Shown here: positions 2,314-24,784 of the stretch, piece by piece
Layout of the letters: each line of letters begins with the position of its first letter
Position numbering within the stretch: the first letter of the stretch is position 1
Assembly (NCBI GenBank): GCA_904063045.1
Contig: CAJFCJ010000006.1
Coordinates: 2,904,946-2,968,945, forward strand
Direction: 5' to 3'
DNA from: Dimorphilus gyrociliatus
Taxonomy: Eukaryota > Animalia > Annelida
Length of the DNA: 64,000 nucleotides
Notes under the pieces: model-generated
What the model saw: only the letters and a program-made list of their open reading frames with translations
The model's database searches: none
Told to the model about the DNA's origin: nothing
Position numbers and translations under genes: made by a program

Positions 2314-5300
2314 ATGGATGAACAAAATCTCCTTCAAGATAATCCAAATAATCCAAATCTCTTTCACACTGGTGATACAGCAACAATGGATGTACCATCG
2401 ATTCCTGATGACAACGCTAATCAAGCCGAAGATAAGAAACAGGAAGATGAGGATAACGGGAATACACAACGTCTAGACGTTATGCAGACGGGCGTCTATG
2501 GAATGGATTCAATGACTGGCAGCATGATCGGTGGTTTATCTGCCAGTGCAGAATCTATAGAATCAGAGAAGGACGAAAAGCTTAGGGAATTATTGGAGAA
2601 CCGTGATAATGGTAATATGGAAGATAGTACCGAATTTATAAGTGAATCTTATCTAATTAGTGAGAAGAAGGATACTGTTGTAGAGTTTGATAAGGGTCCT
2701 TTTGACGATTTTGCTACTCTGTCCAACATTGGTAGTCGACTAGAAGAGAAATTCGATTCTGGTGAAGTTTCAGAGAATTTAATTACGCCGGACGAGAAGC
2801 CTTCGAAAGGGGAAGAAATCAGCGAGGAAATGACAGATCCCCAAATTTCACTTGATAATCAAACTGATTTAGAGGAAGAAAGACTTTTTAAGAGTGACGA
2901 AACGGAAGCAGACAAGTTGGTTTACCAAAGAGATCTAATGGACCAACAAAATGAATTATCTCAATTATCTCAATTAGAAGAGAGAGATGAAAGTAAAGAG
3001 GCAAGTGCCTTGTACGATGTTGGACAAAAAGAATGTGATACGACTGAACTGTTTCAAACTCGAAGTTTGAAAGAATCAGTTCAGGTAGAAGTTCAGAAAA
3101 CTGAAACTAATTTGATTATGACGGAAGAAAGAGTCGAAACTGTTGAAAGACAGGTGGAAATTGTTGAAAAAACGAGTCTTGATTTCAACAATCAGATGGC
3201 ACCAGCGTCGAAAAGTCTTGAGGATAATAGTGATGATGAATCCCAAGTATTAAGGGTAGATACTGATGAATTTAAGGAACTGGAGCAACAGCCTAGAATT
3301 GGAACTGATGATGAATTTCTTAATGATTCCCAAACTTCATTTAGCGACGAAGGTATATCTACGCCTATAACAGCAGACGTTGCCCAAATACAAGAGTCGA
3401 TGGATGATCGAGGATTATCATCCCCGATTCTAGAGAATTATGAGTTATCTGTTGAAAAAGAACACGATAATTCAAATATTGATGATCATACTGTTGAAAA
3501 ACAAGATCTCTATGGCGATGTACGAGACGAAAGTTCTGTTAAAATGGAAGCAATAGAAGAGGAAAAGCTTCTTGAAATGGATATTAGTACTTCTAACGAG
3601 ACTACTCCAAGTTCTTTCCATCAGAAAGAGGAAGCGTGCGCTGACGAAAACGTTCAATCACACGCTGAGATGTACTCTTCAAGTGTTGTAGATACGGAAC
3701 TAATAGAATCGGCAGTTGTAGAAACAGTTCAAGAAGATAAACTAATTGATGAAAACAAAGAAAGTTTCTTTGATGATAACAAAACGAATGCTGAGGAGGA
3801 GCAAACACAAGAAATTGTTTCCAAGGAAGAATCTGCTATCTTAGAAGAGTTGACATTGGAGAGAAAGTCAACAGATCTCACCGAGGAAGAAAATTGTGAG
3901 TCAGTATTAAAGAAGGAAGAAATAACCGATAAACTAGAAGATTCAATCAATTCAACCAAAGAAACAGATTTTGAATTTAGAGAACAAGATGACTATGAGC
4001 AAAATCAAAAAGATTTCCTAGTCGAAAATGTAACAGGAATAGAACGGGAAGAATCCACTGCGGATAGTTCAGGTATAGAGGAAACTATCTCTGAGTCTCA
4101 CAACTCACAAGATTTGTTAAAAGATCAATGTCAAATTGATGAACAATCAATTGATGAACAATCTAACAAGGATAATATGAGCGCATCTCTTTATGATGAA
4201 AAAATTGAAGAAACGTCTCATATTCAAGATAATAGAGATGAGAAAGAAATACTAACATTTGAGGAGGAGGACGAAACACAAACACAGGCTAACTTCGAAC
4301 ATTGTGAGAAAGCGGCAGAAGATCTTTTGCCTGCTTCTAACATAGGTGAGGAAAGAAGCATTTTAAACCCTGAGGAAGCGCATATCGAACAAGAAATAAG
4401 TCAAGAAGAACTCCAACTCAATACACCTACTGATCCAGAAGAGATAGCGACAGCTCAAGATGTAAAAACAACAGAAGGCGTCATCGAAAGCGAACAATTG
4501 CAAGATAACAATGTAGAAAGAGAAGAGTTAAAGGATATTGTCAATGAAGATAACCAAAACTCATTAGCTTCTCTTGAGGAATTAAAGGAATCTTCTGATA
4601 CTAGAACGCATTTAGAATCTGAACAAAGTTTTGCAGCAGATGAAGAGGATTCAAAATTGAGCAGACAGTTTTCAGAAGAACCTCAAGCAATTCCATCAAC
4701 ATTTGAAGAAAAGACTGATATTCCTCCAAGTATTTTGAAAAGCGTTTACAAGAGTCTTGATGATGAGCCATCGAATTTAGAGGAAAATGCAAAGGAACAG
4801 GATTTGGATACAATTGTGAAAGACAATATTCTTGTTTCTAGTGACGAAGATGATAAAGAAAAGGAAAAAGAAGAATCATATACTCTGGATGGCACAGGAG
4901 ATAAGTTTAATGAGACTGAGAAAGTTATCACAGAAGAGCAAACAGGTGAAAAAGAGAATGTGGCAGATTTTCAAGAGGCAGGTTTCGATGATAGACAAGC
5001 AGAACATGAAGAAATCAGTGTAGTAGAAGGTAAAGAATTAGGTTTAGGAGATGTGTCAGGAGAGCATTTAGAAGACAAACAAGAAATTGGTTTATCTGAG
5101 AACCAAAAAGTTCTTTTTGATGACAAATCCCAAGAGTTTGCTTTAGACAAAGAGACAGAATCTGTTGCAGAAGACCACACTAAAGAGCAAGAAGAATCTC
5201 TTCAAGAAAATCTTCAAGATAAGATTGAAGACAAGATTGAGGAACCATGCAGGCTATTAGAAAAAGAAAGAGATGAGAAACTGTTTGAAGAACAAAACGA

Positions 5301-8300
5301 AAAAGATATGGAATATGTGGATCAAAAATTGGACGAACCAACCGAAGAGATACCACAAGAAACGGCCGCAAACACGATGCAAGAGGAATTTGCTGGTGAA
5401 AGCGTGGAAGATAATTCTGGAGAGAAGCAGTCTGAGATTGCTGTGGATGACGAAAGAAATAAATTCGAGGAAAAAAGTATGAAAAGTGACCAAGAACTCC
5501 TATCCACTGAAATGGATGATTTTGCGAAAGATCAAGAACTTCACTCTATGGATAGTGATATTTTAATACAAGATAAAAGTGAGCCTAATACACCAATTGA
5601 TTCGGGAGAGGTAAACGAGGAGTCTGATGACGAAGATGCTAGTTTAAGAGAGCAAATAGATAATTCTATAACAAAAGATGATACCTTGACTGATATTGTT
5701 GGCGTAACAGATGAAAAAATCGAAACGCATGCGCAATCGCAAATGCAAACTATAAGCGACGAGACCTTTGTTGGGTCAATGCAGTCAGCACCAGGTGCAG
5801 AGGATGTAACAGGTGTTGATGAAAAATTACCGATTGATGAGGAAAAACATTCTACTACAACCTCGGAAGAGATTATTGAGGAAGACGACGTTCTCTTGAT
5901 GGAACAATCTTCTTTGGAAAATTCTGCGCCGGTCAGCAATGACCAGGCACTTTTAGATTTGGAAGACAAGCCTGAATTAGAGACTAATGAGTCAGATGCA
6001 AACTTATCGACTGATGTTAAAACAAATATAGCTGAAATTCAACATGACCCAATGGAAGAATGCGGGACAACAATCGAATCGAAAACGGAGCATATTACCG
6101 ACACATCTTTCGCATCAAATGATAATGGCGATGAGAACTTGCTGAATAATACTAGCACATTGGAAGATAAACAGACAGAAGAAAATATTGTTGTTGAAGA
6201 AGCAATTAAAACAGAAATAGAAATAGAGGAAGCAGCAAATGAAACTGTAGACGAGGCTATGGAAGAAATTAAAGAGAGAATGACGGAAGAAGTTGAAGAG
6301 AGAATGACGGAAGAAGTTGAAGAGAGAATTACGGAAGAAGCTGAAGAGAGAATTACAGAAGAAGTTGAAGAGAGAATTACGGAAGAAGCTGAAGAGAGAA
6401 TGACGGAAGAAATTAAAGAGAGAATTACGGAAGAAATTTCCGAGGAAGTTCATGCTGCTATATCCACAACGGAAGAGCACTCAGAAATTAACAAGAAAAC
6501 GGACGAACTTTTAGTTAATGAAGAAGACGAAACTTTAAGTAGATTTGCATCCTCTACTGAGACAATAAAAATGGCCGATAGTTTTCAAGAATTGAGTGAT
6601 AAAACAGAAACGGAATTAATAAAAGAAGCGGGACCAGCAGAAGTTATTAATGAAGCAATTTCAGCAACGAATGAGATGGAAGAGTCTTTCCACCGTGTCG
6701 AAACCACTGTGAATGAAAGCGTTGTTATAACTACTTCCTCTATAAATGAAAGTCTAAACATAGATGAAAGTAATTTTTCGAAGGAAATTACTGTCGAGAA
6801 GACAAATGGAGGAGAATTTTTCGAGAAGAAAACAGCCCTGCCGTCAACTCCCCCTAGCTCCCCTGTTAAAGTTGAACAAACCTTAGCGAGCGGTGAAGTT
6901 AGTCCTCTAGAAGGAATTATTGATAAGAAGCATGTCACTCTTACTCATTCATTCAATGCTGAGGACTTTTCGGAAGATCTAAAGCCTAAGGTAACTCTTA
7001 GCCCTGATGGCGATGATCTCTTTGTTGAAACCTCAGCCGCAGTAGTAACTGTAGCGGCTTTAAACACACAAACGGTAGAAAAAAGTGTATCAAAGCCTCT
7101 GGAATCTCCCGTTACATCCGAAAAATCTGATACTAGCACGAAGAGTTCCACATCTGCGAAAAAGGTACAATTTACCAGAAAAGTAGAGACGCAAACTTCA
7201 ACTATTGCAGCTAAAACTAAATCGAAACCACCACCAAGTCCAAAGACTTCCTCAAAACCTCCTTCAAAACCAGCGTCCGCTCCTGCTCCTAAGCCTAAAA
7301 TAACGCCTAAACCTACTCCTAAGCCTGCTATTTCAGCTCCAAAGCCTAAGACATCACCGACAAAACCAAAATCAGCACCTGTATTATCATCACCAGTGAA
7401 ATCTAGTCCGAAAAAACCAGTTCAAAAAGATGCTAAGCCAGTATCAAAGGCTAAACCTATCAAGTCTAGTCCAGTTAAATATGCTTCTACAGCTGTGAGC
7501 GGTAACGGTAATATTCATAAATCTATGGATAAGAAAAGACAAAGGAGTCCTAGTCCGCAAAAGGCTTTGGAAAGCAATAGAGGAAGATCGAGAAAAGAGG
7601 CGTATGATGCTCAAGTACAAATGGTAGAGCGACTCTATTATAGAGCTATTGCAATCTCACCTCATCATAAAACAGGAAATCCAATTACTGGAATAGGAAT
7701 GAAAAGTACTGATGAAATACGCGATTCAATCTTGGCTGCTTCTCAGGGAGCAAGATCTAGAAGTAAAAATCCATTAACTGGTGAAGGATACGACAGAGAG
7801 AACACCAACCAGCAAGGGAAGGTTAGAAGTAAAAGTTGCGTTGCCATAACCAGACGGAAAAACTTGACTGAAGCCGGAGAGAGTAGAGAAGAGATCAAGG
7901 CACGATACACTCGAAGAGAAAATCCTATTACGGCTAATACTTATGATTCTTATGCGGCTGTTTATACTGGTAAGATATACTATAGAATTACATTCGATGT
8001 TGACTTATCATTTTCCTTGCTATTTAACAGATAGACAACCATTAAACTCTAGTGTACATGAGAATATTCGGCCGGAAAGGAGAGAAGTTGTGAACACTGC
8101 ACCGAAAGGTGAGAGGTCACGTTCGACCCCGAGGAAGCGAGTTCGTAGTCCAACACCCGCCAGAACAAATCCAATCACTGGCGAAGGCTATGACGAACTC
8201 GTTCAACCTCTATCTCTACCAAAGTCGTTTAGTCATCACGGTGGCTTATCCGGAATACTAAGCACTTCAAGACCCAATCCGATAACTATGAGAGGATATG

Positions 8301-12719: not shown

Positions 12720-13100
12720 TATTGACTCTCAACTAAGACTGAATAAAAAATTACAACTATTACATCCGTTATATGACTGCAGATGTTAACTTTAATTACG
12801 GTTATTATAATCTAATCTATGCTATCTCTGTGATCAAGAACAGTTGCGCCATCTACCATATATAGATTCGGTATATAAAAATGTATTGAGTTGGCAGTAA
12901 AAAGATAAATATACAAGAATATTCAAAACTACATATAAGAATATATAAATACATATTTGAGTACATAAATCAGATGCATTTGTATAAAATATTTCACTTT
13001 TCATCCCGTATGAGTTATCTGCTACGATTAAAATAAGCTTATTCGTAACATCTGTTGACAAATGAATACAAGAATTGTTAGCGATCTTCTTTACTTCATT

Positions 13101-14498
13101 CTATTTTCCTGGACAACATTTGCAGTCTTTGCAAGTACATGGATTGCATGTACAGCATTTGCAGCTATCTCCACATTTACATTTACCACCAGTTTTACAA
13201 TCGCAGTCATTACATACACAAGCTTTACCAGGACAGCATGTGCAAGGATCACAAGTACATGGATCGCATTTACAACATCTGCATTTGTCTCCACAACAAC
13301 ATTTTCCTCCATCTTTGCAACCACAATCTTTGCAGTCACAGGTATTCTTTCCGGGACAACATTTACAGTCCTTGCAAGTACATGGGTCGCATTTACAACA
13401 ACTGCATTTGTCTCCACAACAACATTTTCCTCCATCTCTGCAACAGCAATCCTTACATTCACAGGTATTCTTTCCAGGACAGCATCTGCAAGGATCACAA
13501 GTACATGGATCGCATTTACAACAACTGCACTTGTCTCCGCAACAACATTTTCCTCCGTTTTTGCAGTCACAGTCTTTGCAGTCACACTTGTTCTTTCCGG
13601 GACAACATTTACAGTCCTTGCAAGTACATGGGTCGCATTTACAACAACTGCATTTGTCTCCACAACAACATTTACCTCCATCTTTGCAACCACAATCCTT
13701 ACATTCACAGGTATTCTTTCCAGGACAGCATCTGCAAGGATCACAAGTACATGGATCGCATTTACAACAACTGCACTTGTCTCCACAACAACATTTTCCT
13801 CCATCTTTGCAACCACAATCTTTGCAGTCACAGGTATTCTTTCCGGGACAACATTTACAGTCCTTGCAAGTACATGGGTCGCATTTACAACAACTGCATT
13901 TGTCTCCACAACAACATTTTCCTCCATCTCTGCAACAGCAATCCTTACATTCACAGGTATTCTTTCCTGGACAACACTTGCAGTCTTTGCAAGTACATGG
14001 ATCGCATTTACAACAACTGCACTTGTCTCCACAACAACATTTTCCTCCGTTTTTGCAGTCACAGCCTTTGCAGTCACAGGTATTCTTTCCTGGACAACAC
14101 TTGCAGTCTTTGCAAGTACATGGATCGCATTTACAACAACTGCATTTGTCTCCACAACAACATTTTCCTCCGTTTTTGCAGTCACAGTCTTTGCAGTCAC
14201 ATTTGTTCTTTCCGGGACAACACTTGCAGTCCTTGCAAGTACATGGGTCACATTTACAACAACTGCACTTGTCTCCGCAACAACATTTACCTCCATCTTT
14301 GCAACCACAATCCTTACATTCACAGGTATTCTTTCCTGGACAGCATTTGCAGTCTTTGCAAGTACATGGATCGCATTTACAACAACTGCAGTTGTCTCCG
14401 CAGCAACATTTACCTCCGTTTTTGCAGTCACAGTCTTTACAGTCGCATTTCTGGTTGCTTGAACAACAAGTAGGGATTGTTTCTGGTTTCGAAGCCAT
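13101..14498 (-). CDS. Giant multi-domain metallothionein-like protein MT-A (465 aa, 11 tandem units of 39-41 aa, ~179 Cys, intronless)
   Basis: ATG 14498 to TAG 13101. Unit CDCKDCDCKNGGKCCCGDKCSCCKCDPCTCKDCKCCPGKNT. No aromatic residues, no signal peptide, CxC/CC/CCC motifs with Lys/Asp spacers. Confidence 0.8.
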   Translation of the reverse strand: MASKPETIPTCCSSNQKCDCKDCDCKNGGKCCCGDNCSCCKCDPCTCKDCKCCPGKNTCECKDCGCKDGGKCCCGDKCSCCKCDPCTCKDCKCCPGKNKCDCKDCDCKNGGKCCCGDKCSCCKCDPCTCKDCKCCPGKNTCDCKGCDCKNGGKCCCGDKCSCCKCDPCTCKDCKCCPGKNTCECKDCCCRDGGKCCCGDKCSCCKCDPCTCKDCKCCPGKNTCDCKDCGCKDGGKCCCGDKCSCCKCDPCTCDPCRCCPGKNTCECKDCGCKDGGKCCCGDKCSCCKCDPCTCKDCKCCPGKNKCDCKDCDCKNGGKCCCGDKCSCCKCDPCTCDPCRCCPGKNTCECKDCCCRDGGKCCCGDKCSCCKCDPCTCKDCKCCPGKNTCDCKDCGCKDGGKCCCGDKCRCCKCDPCTCDPCTCCPGKACVCNDCDCKTGGKCKCGDSCKCCTCNPCTCKDCKCCPGK

Positions 14499-14550
14499 TT
14501 TATTTTGTTATTATGCCACTAAGTTATATTGTCACACAATTGAGTCGTAG

Positions 14551-14743
14551 TTGAAATGAAAGCAATCTTGCTTATATACTGATACCAAATCTCGTTTTCA
14601 TCTCATTTTCCCATTTTGGCGCACGGAACCTTTTTTAAATCAATGCTTCAATACACTTAAGATAAATGTGAGGCGATGTTACGTGAAGCATGTGAAGGCA
14701 TATGTGAATCAAATTTCACATGTCGCTGTTTCGTTTTGCACTC
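14551..14743 (-). promoter_or_regulatory. MT-A promoter: TATATAAG (14578-14571), ~80-bp block shared with MT-B, TTCAC[GA] cluster (14665-14722), MRE core TGCACTC (14737-14743)
   Basis: Motifs read directly; MRE core consensus is TGCRCNC. Confidence 0.6.
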
Positions 14744-18350: not shown

Positions 18351-18629
18351 ACGTGAGCCTGATTCACGCTTTTTCACACGTTTCACGTTCTTCACGTTCT
18401 TCACGTACTTGATTCACATTGTGCTACGTCACGAAAAAATGAAAAAACAAAGAAAAAGGCCTAAAAGAAAGAAAAAACATTTTCCCGCCCATAACTTCAC
18501 GTTACATGAGTTTTAAATATATTATAAAACCGGTACTGCTTCAGAAGAAGTTCCGTGTGCCAAAATGGGAAAATGAGAGAAAAATGAGAATTTCTATCAG
18601 TATAAAAGCAATATTGTTTTCATTTGAAG
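18351..18629 (+). promoter_or_regulatory. MT-B promoter: TTCAC[GA] cluster (18363-18418, 18496), CRE-like TACGTCA (18425-18431), conserved block 18550-18629 with TATAAAAG (18601)
   Basis: Motifs read directly; block is homologous to the MT-A promoter. Confidence 0.6.
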
Positions 18630-18683
18630 AAAAACTCAAGTTTTCTTAAAACAAAAATTTACAAATAAAATAAACTGAAAAAT

Positions 18684-20138
18684 ATGGCTTCAAAACCAGA
18701 AACGACAACCACTTGTTGTTCAAATAAACAACAATGTAGGGATGGCCACAACAGACAAGAAAAACACTATTCTTCTGATGACAAATTCTCTTCTGACAAA
18801 TATATTCAAAGTACTTACAAAAATTGTAAATGCTGGAACAAAGACATCACTTGTGAATGTCAAGATTGTCGTTGCAAAGATGGAAGGACACGCTGTTCTG
18901 GGGTAAATTGCAGCTGCTGCAAATGTGATCCGCGTACGTGTAATAACTATAAATGCTTTTCTGGAAAGAATACCTGTGACTGCAAAGACTGCGACTGCAA
19001 AAACGGAGGGAAATGTTGTTGCGGAGATAATTGCAGTTGTTGTAAATGCGACACATGTACTTGCAAGGACTGCAAGTGTTGTCCCGGAAAGAATACCTGT
19101 GAATGTAAGGATTGTGGTTGCAAAGATGGAGGAAAATGTTGTTGCGGAGACAATTGCAGTTGTTGTAAATGCGACCCATGTACTTGCAAGGACTGCAAGT
19201 GCTGTCCAGGAAAGAATACCTGTGAATGTAAGGATTGTGGTTGCAAAAACGGAGGAAAATGTTGTTGCGGAGATAATTGCAGTTGTTGTAAATGCGAATC
19301 ATGTACTTGCAAGGACTGCAAGTGCTGTCCAGGAAAGAATACCTGTGAATGTAAGGATTGTCGTTGCAAAGATGGAGGAAAATGTTGTTGCGGAGACAAT
19401 TGCAGTTGTTGTAAATGCGACCCATGTACTTGCAAGGACTGCAAGTGCTGTCCAGGAAAGAATACCTGTGAATGTAAGGATTGTCGTTGCAAAGATGGAG
19501 GAAAATGTTGTTGCGGAGACAATTGCAGTTGTTGTAAATGCGAATCATGTACTTGCAAGGACTGCAAGTGCTGTCCAGGAAAGAATACCTGTGACTGCAA
19601 AGACTGCGACTGCAAAAACGGAGGAAAATGTTGTTGCGGAGATAATTGCAGTTGTTGTAAATGCGAATCATGTACTTGCAAGGACTGCAAGTGCTGTCCA
19701 GGAAAGAATACCTGTGACTGCAAAGACTGCGACTGCAAAAACGGAGGAAAATGTTGTTGCGGAGATAATTGCAGTTGTTGTAAATGCGACCCATGTACTT
19801 GCAAGGACTGCAAGTGCTGTCCAGGAAAGAATACCTGTGACTGCAAAGACTGCGACTGCAAAAACGGAGGAAAATGTTGTTGCGGAGATAATTGCAGTTG
19901 TTGTAAATGCGAATCATGTACTTGCAAGGACTGCAAGTGTTGTCCCGGAAAGAATACCTGTGAAAGTAAGGATTGTCGTTGCGAAGATGGAAGAAAATGT
20001 TGTTGTGGAGACAAATGCAGTTGTTGTAAATGCGACCCATGTACTTGCAAGGACTGCAAGTGCTGTCCAGGAAAGAATACCTGTGAATGTAAGGATTGTC
20101 GTTGCGAAGATGGAGGAAATTGCTTTGTAGAGGATTAA
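18684..20138 (+). CDS. Giant multi-domain metallothionein-like protein MT-B (484 aa, ~164 Cys; two eroded N-terminal units, nine near-intact units, partial last unit)
   Basis: Same MASKPET start and 123-bp unit as MT-A, opposite orientation. Confidence 0.78.
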   Translation: MASKPETTTTCCSNKQQCRDGHNRQEKHYSSDDKFSSDKYIQSTYKNCKCWNKDITCECQDCRCKDGRTRCSGVNCSCCKCDPRTCNNYKCFSGKNTCDCKDCDCKNGGKCCCGDNCSCCKCDTCTCKDCKCCPGKNTCECKDCGCKDGGKCCCGDNCSCCKCDPCTCKDCKCCPGKNTCECKDCGCKNGGKCCCGDNCSCCKCESCTCKDCKCCPGKNTCECKDCRCKDGGKCCCGDNCSCCKCDPCTCKDCKCCPGKNTCECKDCRCKDGGKCCCGDNCSCCKCESCTCKDCKCCPGKNTCDCKDCDCKNGGKCCCGDNCSCCKCESCTCKDCKCCPGKNTCDCKDCDCKNGGKCCCGDNCSCCKCDPCTCKDCKCCPGKNTCDCKDCDCKNGGKCCCGDNCSCCKCESCTCKDCKCCPGKNTCESKDCRCEDGRKCCCGDKCSCCKCDPCTCKDCKCCPGKNTCECKDCRCEDGGNCFVED

Positions 20139-22162: not shown

Positions 22163-24784
22163 TTATTTCTGTCTTAAATCTGCTTTTATTAGTAGGCCAT
22201 AGATAATTAATGAATTATCATTTTCAACGAACCATTCTATTTCGGTGTTGGAAAATCTGCAGAGAAATTCAATTGTTTATTGCATAACGAACAAGATTTA
22301 GGTGAATACATACGATGGATCAAATTGGAGTTGTTTATTGCCGTTTCTACCTTGAGCTGTATAGCTATCGGGTCTTACTAAGACTTGAAAAGCCAATTTA
22401 ATGTCATAAGCTCCGTATCTTTTAAGTAAAAATGGAATATTAAACCGACAAATATTTAAAATCTCCAACTGATTAAGTACCTTCTTGACTGAGATGTGTA
22501 ACTGCAATATTTAATTGATGGAGAAACAAATCTAGTTGCTGATTCTCGGATTTCTGAATTACGACTTTCAATAACTTCTTTTACACTATCGCTGAAAGAT
22601 ATTGGAAGATAGGCTCTATGCCAATCCTCAAAGTCGTACACGGTTGCATGGGTGTCGTGAACGTTGAGCCCTATCCTATACCATCCAAGAGGCAAAACAT
22701 ATTTTCTTAAAGGCTTTCCCCTATGATAATAGTCATTGTCTTTTCTATAAAGGTGGCAATTATGACAGAAACATTTGCTATGTCTTTCTGCTTTGTAAGA
22801 ATCTCCTATAAGTTTAAAAGTTGTAAACAAATTAGTTGCTTCGTTTAGCTGTTAAAATAGACTAACTTATGGATAATTCAGTTTTAAAATATTTATCACA
22901 TAAATTTTTTAATTGACAAATTTCTGAGTCTTTTATCCTCTTGATTTCGTTCAATTTTAAGATACAAGTTGAAATTAAATCATCAAATTCGTTTCCTTTT
23001 AATTTTTCCAATTCCATTATGAATCTATCTGCGTTGAAATTCCTCGGTAAGGTGTCTACTTTTCTAATAGTTTTAATAGTCATTGAGAAACAGACGCTTA
23101 AACAATTTAAAAGATGTTCACAGGACGTTAAATCGTTTGGGTCTAAATTTTCCAATTTATTTCCCAACATGTTCATTATACCCATATCAAACAAATGTTG
23201 GTAATTCCTTTCATTTCTCAAAGCATACCTTAAAATTTCAAGAATTAACGTCGATTGGAGTTTATCATTGAAATATTTTATCAGTAAATTCGCACAAGTT
23301 TCTATAAAAGGAAAAACAGTTATATAGTTATTTAGCATAGCTATTTTTTTATTTAAAAACAACCATCAAGTTCAAAGGTTTCTCCACAAAGAAGAATACT
23401 TATCGTTAGAGTAACTAGTTTGATGTTATCAGGTGTGAGATGGCATCTTGTAAAGTTAATATAGTAATCTCTTTTTTCCAAAATTCTACCTGATATCTCC
23501 GATATCTTACAGCCCTGTTTAATTAACTGTAAAGTACACAGCAAAATTCCATTCGGATTTAACTGTTTAACAATTAAAATATTAATGAATTAAGATGAAT
23601 TTTAAAATAATTATATTGTATTGTACTTTAAGTTTTTCGGCCTCCATTACAATGTGTAAAAGATCAATAAATGAATTGTCAAAAGCCAATTTAGCGAACA
23701 TAGCATTCTTCTTTGAACAACTCTTGAAAAATTTACACATCATTCTGTAACTTTGTTGAATATCATGATCGTCCATATACAATGTGAAAAATCTCAACAT
23801 TTTATTTGCAACCTCAAAAAACTGACTTTTCATAATAATGGTTAGAATAGTTTCGTATAGGATACTATCACAGTAGCATACTCTTAAAAATTTTAATAGT
23901 TTCTTTAAAAAATCTTTAAAAAGAGAGTATTCATTAATTTTTGCTATAAGATCCAAAATTTTAAGAAGAACTTTAGTAAACGTTTCCAAATCGCTATAAT
24001 ATCCTTCAGATTTAAGAAGATACGGTAGTTTCGCAACGCTAATTTCACAGTTTTTACTGGAGATGCTTACCGTTAGGAACAGATTTTTATTCTGTTTTGT
24101 AAATAATTCAGTTATTCCGGTAAAACATATACCGTAATCTATATCATTTGTTCCGAATGATAGAGTTCCTCTTTTAAAATCGACTATCATTTTGAAATAG
24201 TCGGGAATAACGAAGCTCGGCGAACAATTCTCCGGGTAGCTATGAATTACTTCATTCTTATAATAAAATTCTTTACTGTTTAAATCCCAACCAAATGAAT
24301 TCTCATTCTGACCGCAAAGTGGAACGAGAGAGCTTTCTCTTTTAGAAACTGAATCGGTTGATAAACCAATTATTGAGAATTTACCTCTTCTCGTTTCTTT
24401 AGGCCAATATATTTGATAAACGTGAATTCCTTTGTATAATCCTTCTGTACACTTAGCTAAATCTGAGGAGGTTTTGGAAATATTTTTACGAATCGTTATC
24501 TTTTCATCGGTTATTGTAAAGTTATCTGAGGAATCGATCTTATCCCATTGAAATACATTTTCTTGTTTGAACCATTGGGGTACACAACCTTGTTTAGCTT
24601 TAACAGGATTAACTTCATACGCTTTAATACGCTTTTCCCAAGCATCCAATGGAAGTGTAAACTCATCCTGAAAATGATACTGTCCTTCATAATTATCTCT
24701 TTCACAATCAGTACCGGATGCATTTCTTATTAGAGTACTTGTTTTCGATTCTATATCACCTAAATCGCTTAGATTGTTACCCAT
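22163..24784 (-). CDS. Cluster gene P2: MG-start SPRY - helical - NEURL4-type ART (His lost)
   Basis: MGNNLS; SPRY WD...KGIHVYQIYWP...SFGWD; CFCHNCH; WHRAYLPI in place of YHGT; SPSIKY; AFQVLVRP; EIEW; stop 22163-22165. Confidence 0.82.

Follow-up and report, generated by a model that had tools for sequence, protein, structure and literature searches.

The DNA analysed here, hereafter the window, is a 64,000-nt stretch of the Dimorphilus gyrociliatus genome (assembly GCA_904063045.1, contig CAJFCJ010000006.1, positions 2,904,946 to 2,968,945 of the forward strand). It carries two intronless genes, which we call A and B, that encode tandem arrays of a cysteine-rich unit. Gene A (13101..14498, minus strand, with its stop codon at 13101-13103) encodes 465 aa followed by a stop. 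Gene B (18684..20138, plus strand), a paralogous open reading frame of 484 aa with 164 Cys (33.9%), is a second, partly decayed copy that lies 4.2 kb from gene A and had been overlooked in the preliminary description of this locus. The genes are divergently oriented and thus form an inverted pair; between them lie a GNAT gene and a gene that reads as CRAL-TRIO-like but has no Pfam match, and a short-chain dehydrogenase gene, starting near 12720, is found downstream of gene A. When all of the 77.9-Mb assembly was searched in six frames, genes A and B were the only loci recovered.

Other features of the window deserve a brief mention. A single open frame of 1906 aa (2314-8034, plus strand) encodes a very acidic product rich in E, D, S, and T, and contains a 24-nt tandem repeat (6261-6435) specifying a run of the EE(V/A/I)EER(I/M)T type. 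Further along, at least nine paralogous genes stand in a row on both strands between 22800 and 59500, each with an “MG...” start and a helical-repeat-like exon after it. An SPRY domain was confirmed once in this row (PF00622, E = 6e-9, 23582-24784), and an SPRY-domain family has expanded greatly in this region.

Translation of gene A gave 179 Cys among 465 residues (38.5%), arranged in 11 tandem units and accompanied by no aromatic residue, exactly as the preliminary description had stated (~179 Cys, ~38%). The other residues include 82 K, 59 D, 49 G, 27 P, 23 T, 17 N, and 13 S; F, W, Y, H, and L are absent, and the chain has a single I, a single V, a single M, and two A. The predicted mass is 48.6 kDa, and the predicted pI is 8.1. 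By direct reading of the chain rather than by a signal-peptide predictor, no hydrophobic segment is present anywhere in the product, which would exclude a signal peptide, in agreement with the earlier observation, as well as a membrane segment.

The protein consists of a 15-aa leader, ten units of 41 aa, and a final unit of 40 aa. At the DNA level, the array (13104..14453, minus strand) comprises ten 123-nt units and, at its end, a diverged 120-nt unit (13104-13223), and Tandem Repeats Finder reported a period of 123 with 10.9 copies (score 1742, span 13105-14444). Each unit holds 16 Cys, except for two units with 17 and the last one with 15. Both the period and the Cys count per unit bear out the 41-aa, 16-Cys unit described previously, which follows the pattern x2[CxC]x2[CxC]x5[CCC]x3[CxCC]xCx2[CxC]x2[CxCC]x3 and has a Cys density of 39%. 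This module had been presented as unclassified and divided 8+8. The first part stands, given that no Pfam metallothionein family matches it; the 8+8 split is arbitrary, and the unit reads at least equally well as two 7-Cys halves, each led by CxCxxCxC, that are linked by a CxC.

The units of gene A are not equally related to one another. The proposed resemblance of units 5-6 to 9-10 and of units 2-3 to 7-8 is reflected in DNA identities of 100% (5/9), 96% (6/10), 96% (2/7), and 89% (3/8), and the array also has super-periods (246 and 492 nt). In addition, unit 8 looks recombinant, with a front like one unit type and a back like another. Such a mosaic, with its higher-order pattern, is what unequal crossing-over, the process suggested in the preliminary description, is expected to produce. 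The identity of units 5 and 9 over 123 nt and the 246- and 492-nt super-repeats could also speak for an assembly artefact, in which the array was collapsed or expanded and the number of units is wrong. We consider this very unlikely: most units differ by 4-22% and therefore provide unique anchors, the 1.35-kb array is embedded in a multi-megabase contig of a 349-contig assembly, and gene B contains an independent array of similar size.

Gene B begins with nearly the same leader, since 10 of its first 12 residues match gene A. On the plus strand, the leader gives way to two decayed units (18729-18968), where single-base changes have turned most or some Cys into Y, S, F, R, H, or W. The following nine units (18969-20075) are intact, and the last one (20076-20138) is truncated, with an early stop and a non-Cys tail. 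The product has eight aromatic residues and two His, nearly all in the two decayed units, with one Phe added by the truncated end. The decayed units are still in frame over 80 codons. We considered an intron that would excise them; the one donor/acceptor pair inspected by eye disrupts the frame. With Cys lost from its first two units and its end truncated, this part of the locus is evidently decaying, and the ends of gene B may reflect erosion from both ends of the array or, alternatively, a nascent N-terminal region. Both unit types are found in both genes (e.g., A1/B1, 96% identity; A3/B5-7, 93%), and the ancestor of the pair would therefore have been a multi-unit array already.

To assess constraint, we compared the 19 complete units of both genes. 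Cys is conserved in 303 of the 304 cells formed by the 16 Cys columns, and TGT and TGC are mixed in 9 of these 16 columns. Pairwise differences at codon positions 1, 2, and 3 number 408:286:1790, the corresponding variable columns number 9, 6, and 27, and pN/pS is 0.14 in the Cys frame. The last unit of gene A, the most diverged and the oldest (75% identity to the consensus), has kept 15 of 16 Cys and shows five silent changes in Cys codons. Array DNA is therefore constrained as coding sequence. These values do not choose the strand, however, because the antisense frame that shares the wobble positions has a pN/pS of 0.18, and pN/pS was dropped as a strand test. On repeat arrays, such a wobble-sharing antisense frame is a trap for selection-based gene calling. 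In both arrays (13075-14550 on the plus strand and 18947-20059 on the minus strand), all six frames are largely free of stop codons.

Besides its low pN/pS, the antisense frame stays open for 491 codons over gene A, which raises the question of whether the true product is its Q/H/L/S/P-rich protein. The frame contains no ATG across gene A, and its upstream side has neither a TATA box nor a conserved block. In contrast, in each of the two inverted copies it is the Cys frame whose 5' end carries the conserved promoter, the leader, and the start context, the last of these having A at -3 and G at +4 around the ATG. On these grounds, namely, the missing antisense ATG and the start context, TATA box, and promoter block of both copies, we assigned the strand to the Cys frame and regard the antisense product as highly improbable.

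The proximal promoter is conserved between the two genes. An ungapped block of 103 nt upstream of gene A (14539..14642, minus strand) is 83% identical to its counterpart upstream of gene B (18536..18639, plus strand; the alignment scores 106, whereas shuffled sequences reach 34 at most); alignment of the 3' flanks revealed no similarity between the genes. Within each block lie a TATA box, 80 nt upstream of the ATG in gene A (14571-14578, minus strand) and about 80 nt upstream in gene B (18601-18608, plus strand), and a 28-nt core (14601-14628, minus strand, and 18551-18578, plus strand) that occurs genome-wide (78 Mb) only at these two genes. Another element, CTTCACGT, has four copies in the 64-kb window, every one within the promoters of A and B. 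The gene A copy, with its ACGT core, is found at 14681..14688 (minus strand), at -190, the same position as in gene B, whose copies are at 18390-18397, 18399-18406, and 18495-18502 (plus strand). Hence, each gene has one copy at about -190, and the other two form a short local tandem in B; we treat CTTCACGT as a candidate cis element and nothing further. As for TGATTCAC, three of its six copies in the window are in the A and B promoters (18360-18420 and 14690-14720), and in promoter B it adjoins the CTTCACGT copies. The metal-response-element core TGCRCNC has a single match upstream of gene A (14737..14743, plus strand, about -240), which is at chance level: the window contains 11 matches for 12.1 expected, of which promoter A accounts for one and the vicinity of promoter B for one or two. 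Downstream, a possible poly(A) signal, ATTAAA, lies 304 nt past the stop codon of gene A (12791..12796, minus strand), and a possible signal of gene B lies 227 nt past its stop codon.

Conservation of the promoter also bears on whether the locus is alive. A silent or dying locus, whose frames remain open merely because the unit has few stop-prone codons and whose genes are becoming pseudogenes, would account for several observations: neither gene is present in public protein sets, stop codons are scarce in all six frames of the arrays, and gene B has decayed units with aromatic residues and His, together with a truncated end. That the 80 decayed codons of gene B have stayed open is itself unremarkable (estimate, about 0.1-0.3). 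Such a locus would not be expected to show a strong third-position excess, nor Cys conserved in 303 of 304 cells even in units that are only 75-80% identical. Moreover, the promoter block has been kept while the flanks have diverged beyond recognition, and gene A is intact from its ATG onward, its stop codon falling precisely on a unit end. We therefore find silence of the locus quite unlikely; to judge from their sequences, A and B are a real, strongly constrained gene pair.

We next turn to the relatives of these genes. No Pfam or NCBIfam family matched at E values of up to 10, whether the query was the entire chain, its N-terminal 97 aa, one unit, or a pair of units, and the gene A product fits no profile of the curated metallothionein families (Pfam Metallothio and relatives). 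Nothing significant emerged from word-index protein searches among candidates of 53-814 aa, which were queried with the complete chain, its first 97 residues, and a 205-aa piece. Their sole row was P0006, a JGI hypothetical protein of 213 aa (E = 0.26). It has five repeats of CKCDPCTCDPC, as in units 6, 8, and 10 of gene A, followed by a C-terminal hydrophobic anchor, and its likeness to gene A is probably due to convergence. A full HMMER search of 1.84 billion representatives gave five weak matches (best E = 8.6e-7), which we rejected as unrelated repeat proteins of the same period; they include bacterial surface repeats and EGF repeats, and none is Cys-rich like a metallothionein. The exact A and B protein sequences are absent from a collection of 15 billion predicted proteins, which contains no fragment of either one and no recorded gene with either product, and the ESM Atlas gave no usable match. 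A genome-wide search with a degenerate DNA pattern for CxCxxCxCxxC picked up an overwhelming number of TGY trinucleotide runs, which are CAG/CAA repeats read in reverse. Its single additional candidate (L009), a hydrophobic protein that contains a Cys cluster, is not a metallothionein. Thus, genes A and B appear to have no close relative in public protein sets, and relatives in unannotated annelid genomes are possible. The pair illustrates that coding genes made of tandem repeats can be missing from such sets.

What, then, could these proteins be? A high content of Cys in CxC, CC, CCC, and CxxC motifs and few aromatic residues or His are working criteria for metallothioneins (PMC11645667, PMC8283569). 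Gene A has 38.5% Cys in such motifs and no F, W, Y, or H, and its composition and motifs fit the metallothionein-like character noted earlier. At 48.6 kDa, it departs from the low molecular weight (classically <10 kDa) that is also used to define the class; multi-modular metallothioneins of up to 399 aa have nevertheless been accepted (PMC8476144). The design of the latter, head-to-tail repeats with invariant Cys positions, is found in gene A (10.9 copies; Cys kept in 303/304 cells across the units of A and B). Counting against this assignment are the absence of sequence similarity to any Pfam or known metallothionein, the absence of both proteins from the predicted proteins searched, the decay of part of gene B, and the lack of enrichment of metal-response-element cores (11 versus 12 expected). 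Weighing these observations, we propose that A and B are probably lineage-specific multi-modular metallothioneins, built from a new 16-Cys module and expanded by unequal crossing-over. In this regard, they likely represent a record-size variant of a known multi-modular class and not a new kind of system.

Chemistry leaves two plausible options. Without hydrophobic residues, the chain would have no folding core, and structure could form through metal-thiolate clusters or through disulfides. In the second case, A and B would be Cys-rich structural or redox proteins held together by disulfide cross-links, comparable to keratin-associated, sperm, and eggshell-membrane Cys-rich proteins. The sequence search of the PDB, with E values of 0.29-0.4 only, is far from significance; its top entry (E = 0.29) is a module from a cysteine-rich protein of the eggshell membrane. 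A signal peptide may likewise be missing from structural proteins of the ultra-high-sulfur kind, which is compatible with this alternative; the absence of a signal peptide or hydrophobic segment does, however, exclude classical secretion. Composition also disagrees, since gene A is rich in K, D, and G with CxC and CCC motifs, whereas keratin-associated and sperm proteins are rich in P, S, Q, and R. Finally, AlphaFold2, run on the single sequence, predicted no autonomous fold (mean pLDDT of 39.7) and no confident solenoid or knot. This predicted lack of a fold fits an apo-thionein but proves nothing. Taken together, we regard the disulfide-linked structure as unlikely and continue with the metallothionein.

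According to this proposal, A and B would be a young inverted pair in Dimorphilus gyrociliatus, each gene a single exon transcribed from its own TATA promoter, and unequal crossing-over together with gene conversion would have multiplied the 41-aa module to 11 copies in gene A. Lacking a secretion signal, the product would stay in the reducing cytosol as a chain without a hydrophobic core that folds only as its thiolates wrap around d10 metal ions (Zn, Cd, or Cu(I)). We infer that both genes would be expressed and that their products would form cytosolic metal clusters with a metal preference of their own and with the very high capacity suggested in the preliminary description. By analogy with measured stoichiometries, gene A would hold roughly 55-65 Zn or Cd ions, 5-6 per module; this estimate is scaled from ~2.9 Cys per divalent ion, as given by BscMT1 (105 Cys/36 Zn; PMC8476144) and wMT-2 (20 Cys/7 Cd). 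Likewise, its K:N of 82:17 resembles that of Cd/Zn-type rather than Cu-type snail metallothioneins, tabulated in PMC7084494, and may point to divalent metals rather than Cu.

We compared gene A with the largest metallothioneins that we found reported. To judge by its translation, it would exceed OdiMT2, BscMT1, Alinda 10md-MT, and the metallothionein of Tremella, which is reportedly 257 aa long, in length, Cys number, and Cys density. It had been thought possibly among the largest known; with 465 aa and 179 Cys, it surpasses the largest that we encountered, and the papers from 2024-2026 in our literature survey named none larger. The Alinda biplicata 10md-MT has 319 aa and 90 Cys (28%), and this snail resembles D. 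gyrociliatus in having two intronless isoform genes, 9md-MT and 10md-MT, that differ in their number of repeats (PMC7084494). As in gene A, the internal repeats are near identical and the end domains more divergent, K:N is high, and His is absent (PMC7084494). These multi-domain proteins are functional Cd/Zn binders that confer tolerance (PMC11645667). Their repeats, however, go back to the canonical mollusc metallothionein and are beta domains of ~30 aa with 9 Cys each, whereas the 41-aa, 16-Cys unit of gene A has no detectable relatives.

Tunicates provide two further cases. OdiMT2 of Oikopleura dioica (399 aa, 123 Cys, 31%; PMC8283569) resembles gene A in that a lineage-specific (de novo) module has given rise, by tandem multiplication, to a very large metallothionein whose Cys hardly vary although the rest of the sequence changes fast (PMC8283569, PMC8476144). 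It differs in its repeat unit, composed of a 7-Cys and a 12-Cys domain, in having a gene with exons, and in being a chordate protein. BscMT1 of Botryllus schlosseri (365 aa, 105 Cys, 29%) also consists of tandem repeats, nine in this case, and binds 36 Zn, four per 12-Cys repeat, so that its measured capacity scales with repeat number (PMC8476144). Unlike the module of gene A, its 12-Cys module is homologous to ordinary ascidian metallothioneins.

Within the annelids, tandem repetition in a metallothionein is already known, a point missed in the preliminary description. The 25-kDa CRP of Enchytraeus is reported to be a Cd-inducible protein of tandem Cys-rich repeats which, like gene A, have CxC and CC motifs (PMC3808331 and PMC11851633, citing Willuhn 1994 and Schmitt-Wrede 2004). 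It is about half the size, with 27% Cys, and is encoded by a multi-exon gene that reportedly grew by exon duplication, whereas a single exon holds all units of gene A. No similarity of gene A to the CRP surfaced in the whole-library HMMER search. Earthworm wMT-1/2/3, from the same phylum, are cytosolic Cd/Zn thioneins of 49-109 aa encoded by four-exon genes, with Cys blocks of 11-12 and 8-9 and a Cd7 stoichiometry (PMC4730310, PMC12783039). Gene A, whose single exon encodes 11 of the 16-Cys units, does not conform to this architecture of two Cys blocks, ~80 aa, and multiple exons, and we found no sequence match between it and the wMTs.

At its fullest, our interpretation would make gene A the longest and most Cys-dense metallothionein described, holding ~60 divalent ions through a previously unseen 16-Cys module from the dinophilid lineage, driven by a compact TATA promoter, situated in an annelid genome that ranks among the smallest, and overlooked by annotation, plausibly as a result of repeat-masking. 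We advance this full version tentatively, as possible though short of probable.

Metallothioneins have evolved again and again, and their modules serve as a model of repeat-protein evolution. If metal binding holds true, A and B would be another independent invention of a metallothionein and its largest example, widening the known range of size and thiol density, and in this pair, one gene intact and the other decaying at both ends, the birth, expansion, and erosion of such arrays could be followed at a single locus. Dimorphilus gyrociliatus is an ecotoxicology test species, and in that event, the genes would also provide a direct molecular marker of metal exposure in it.
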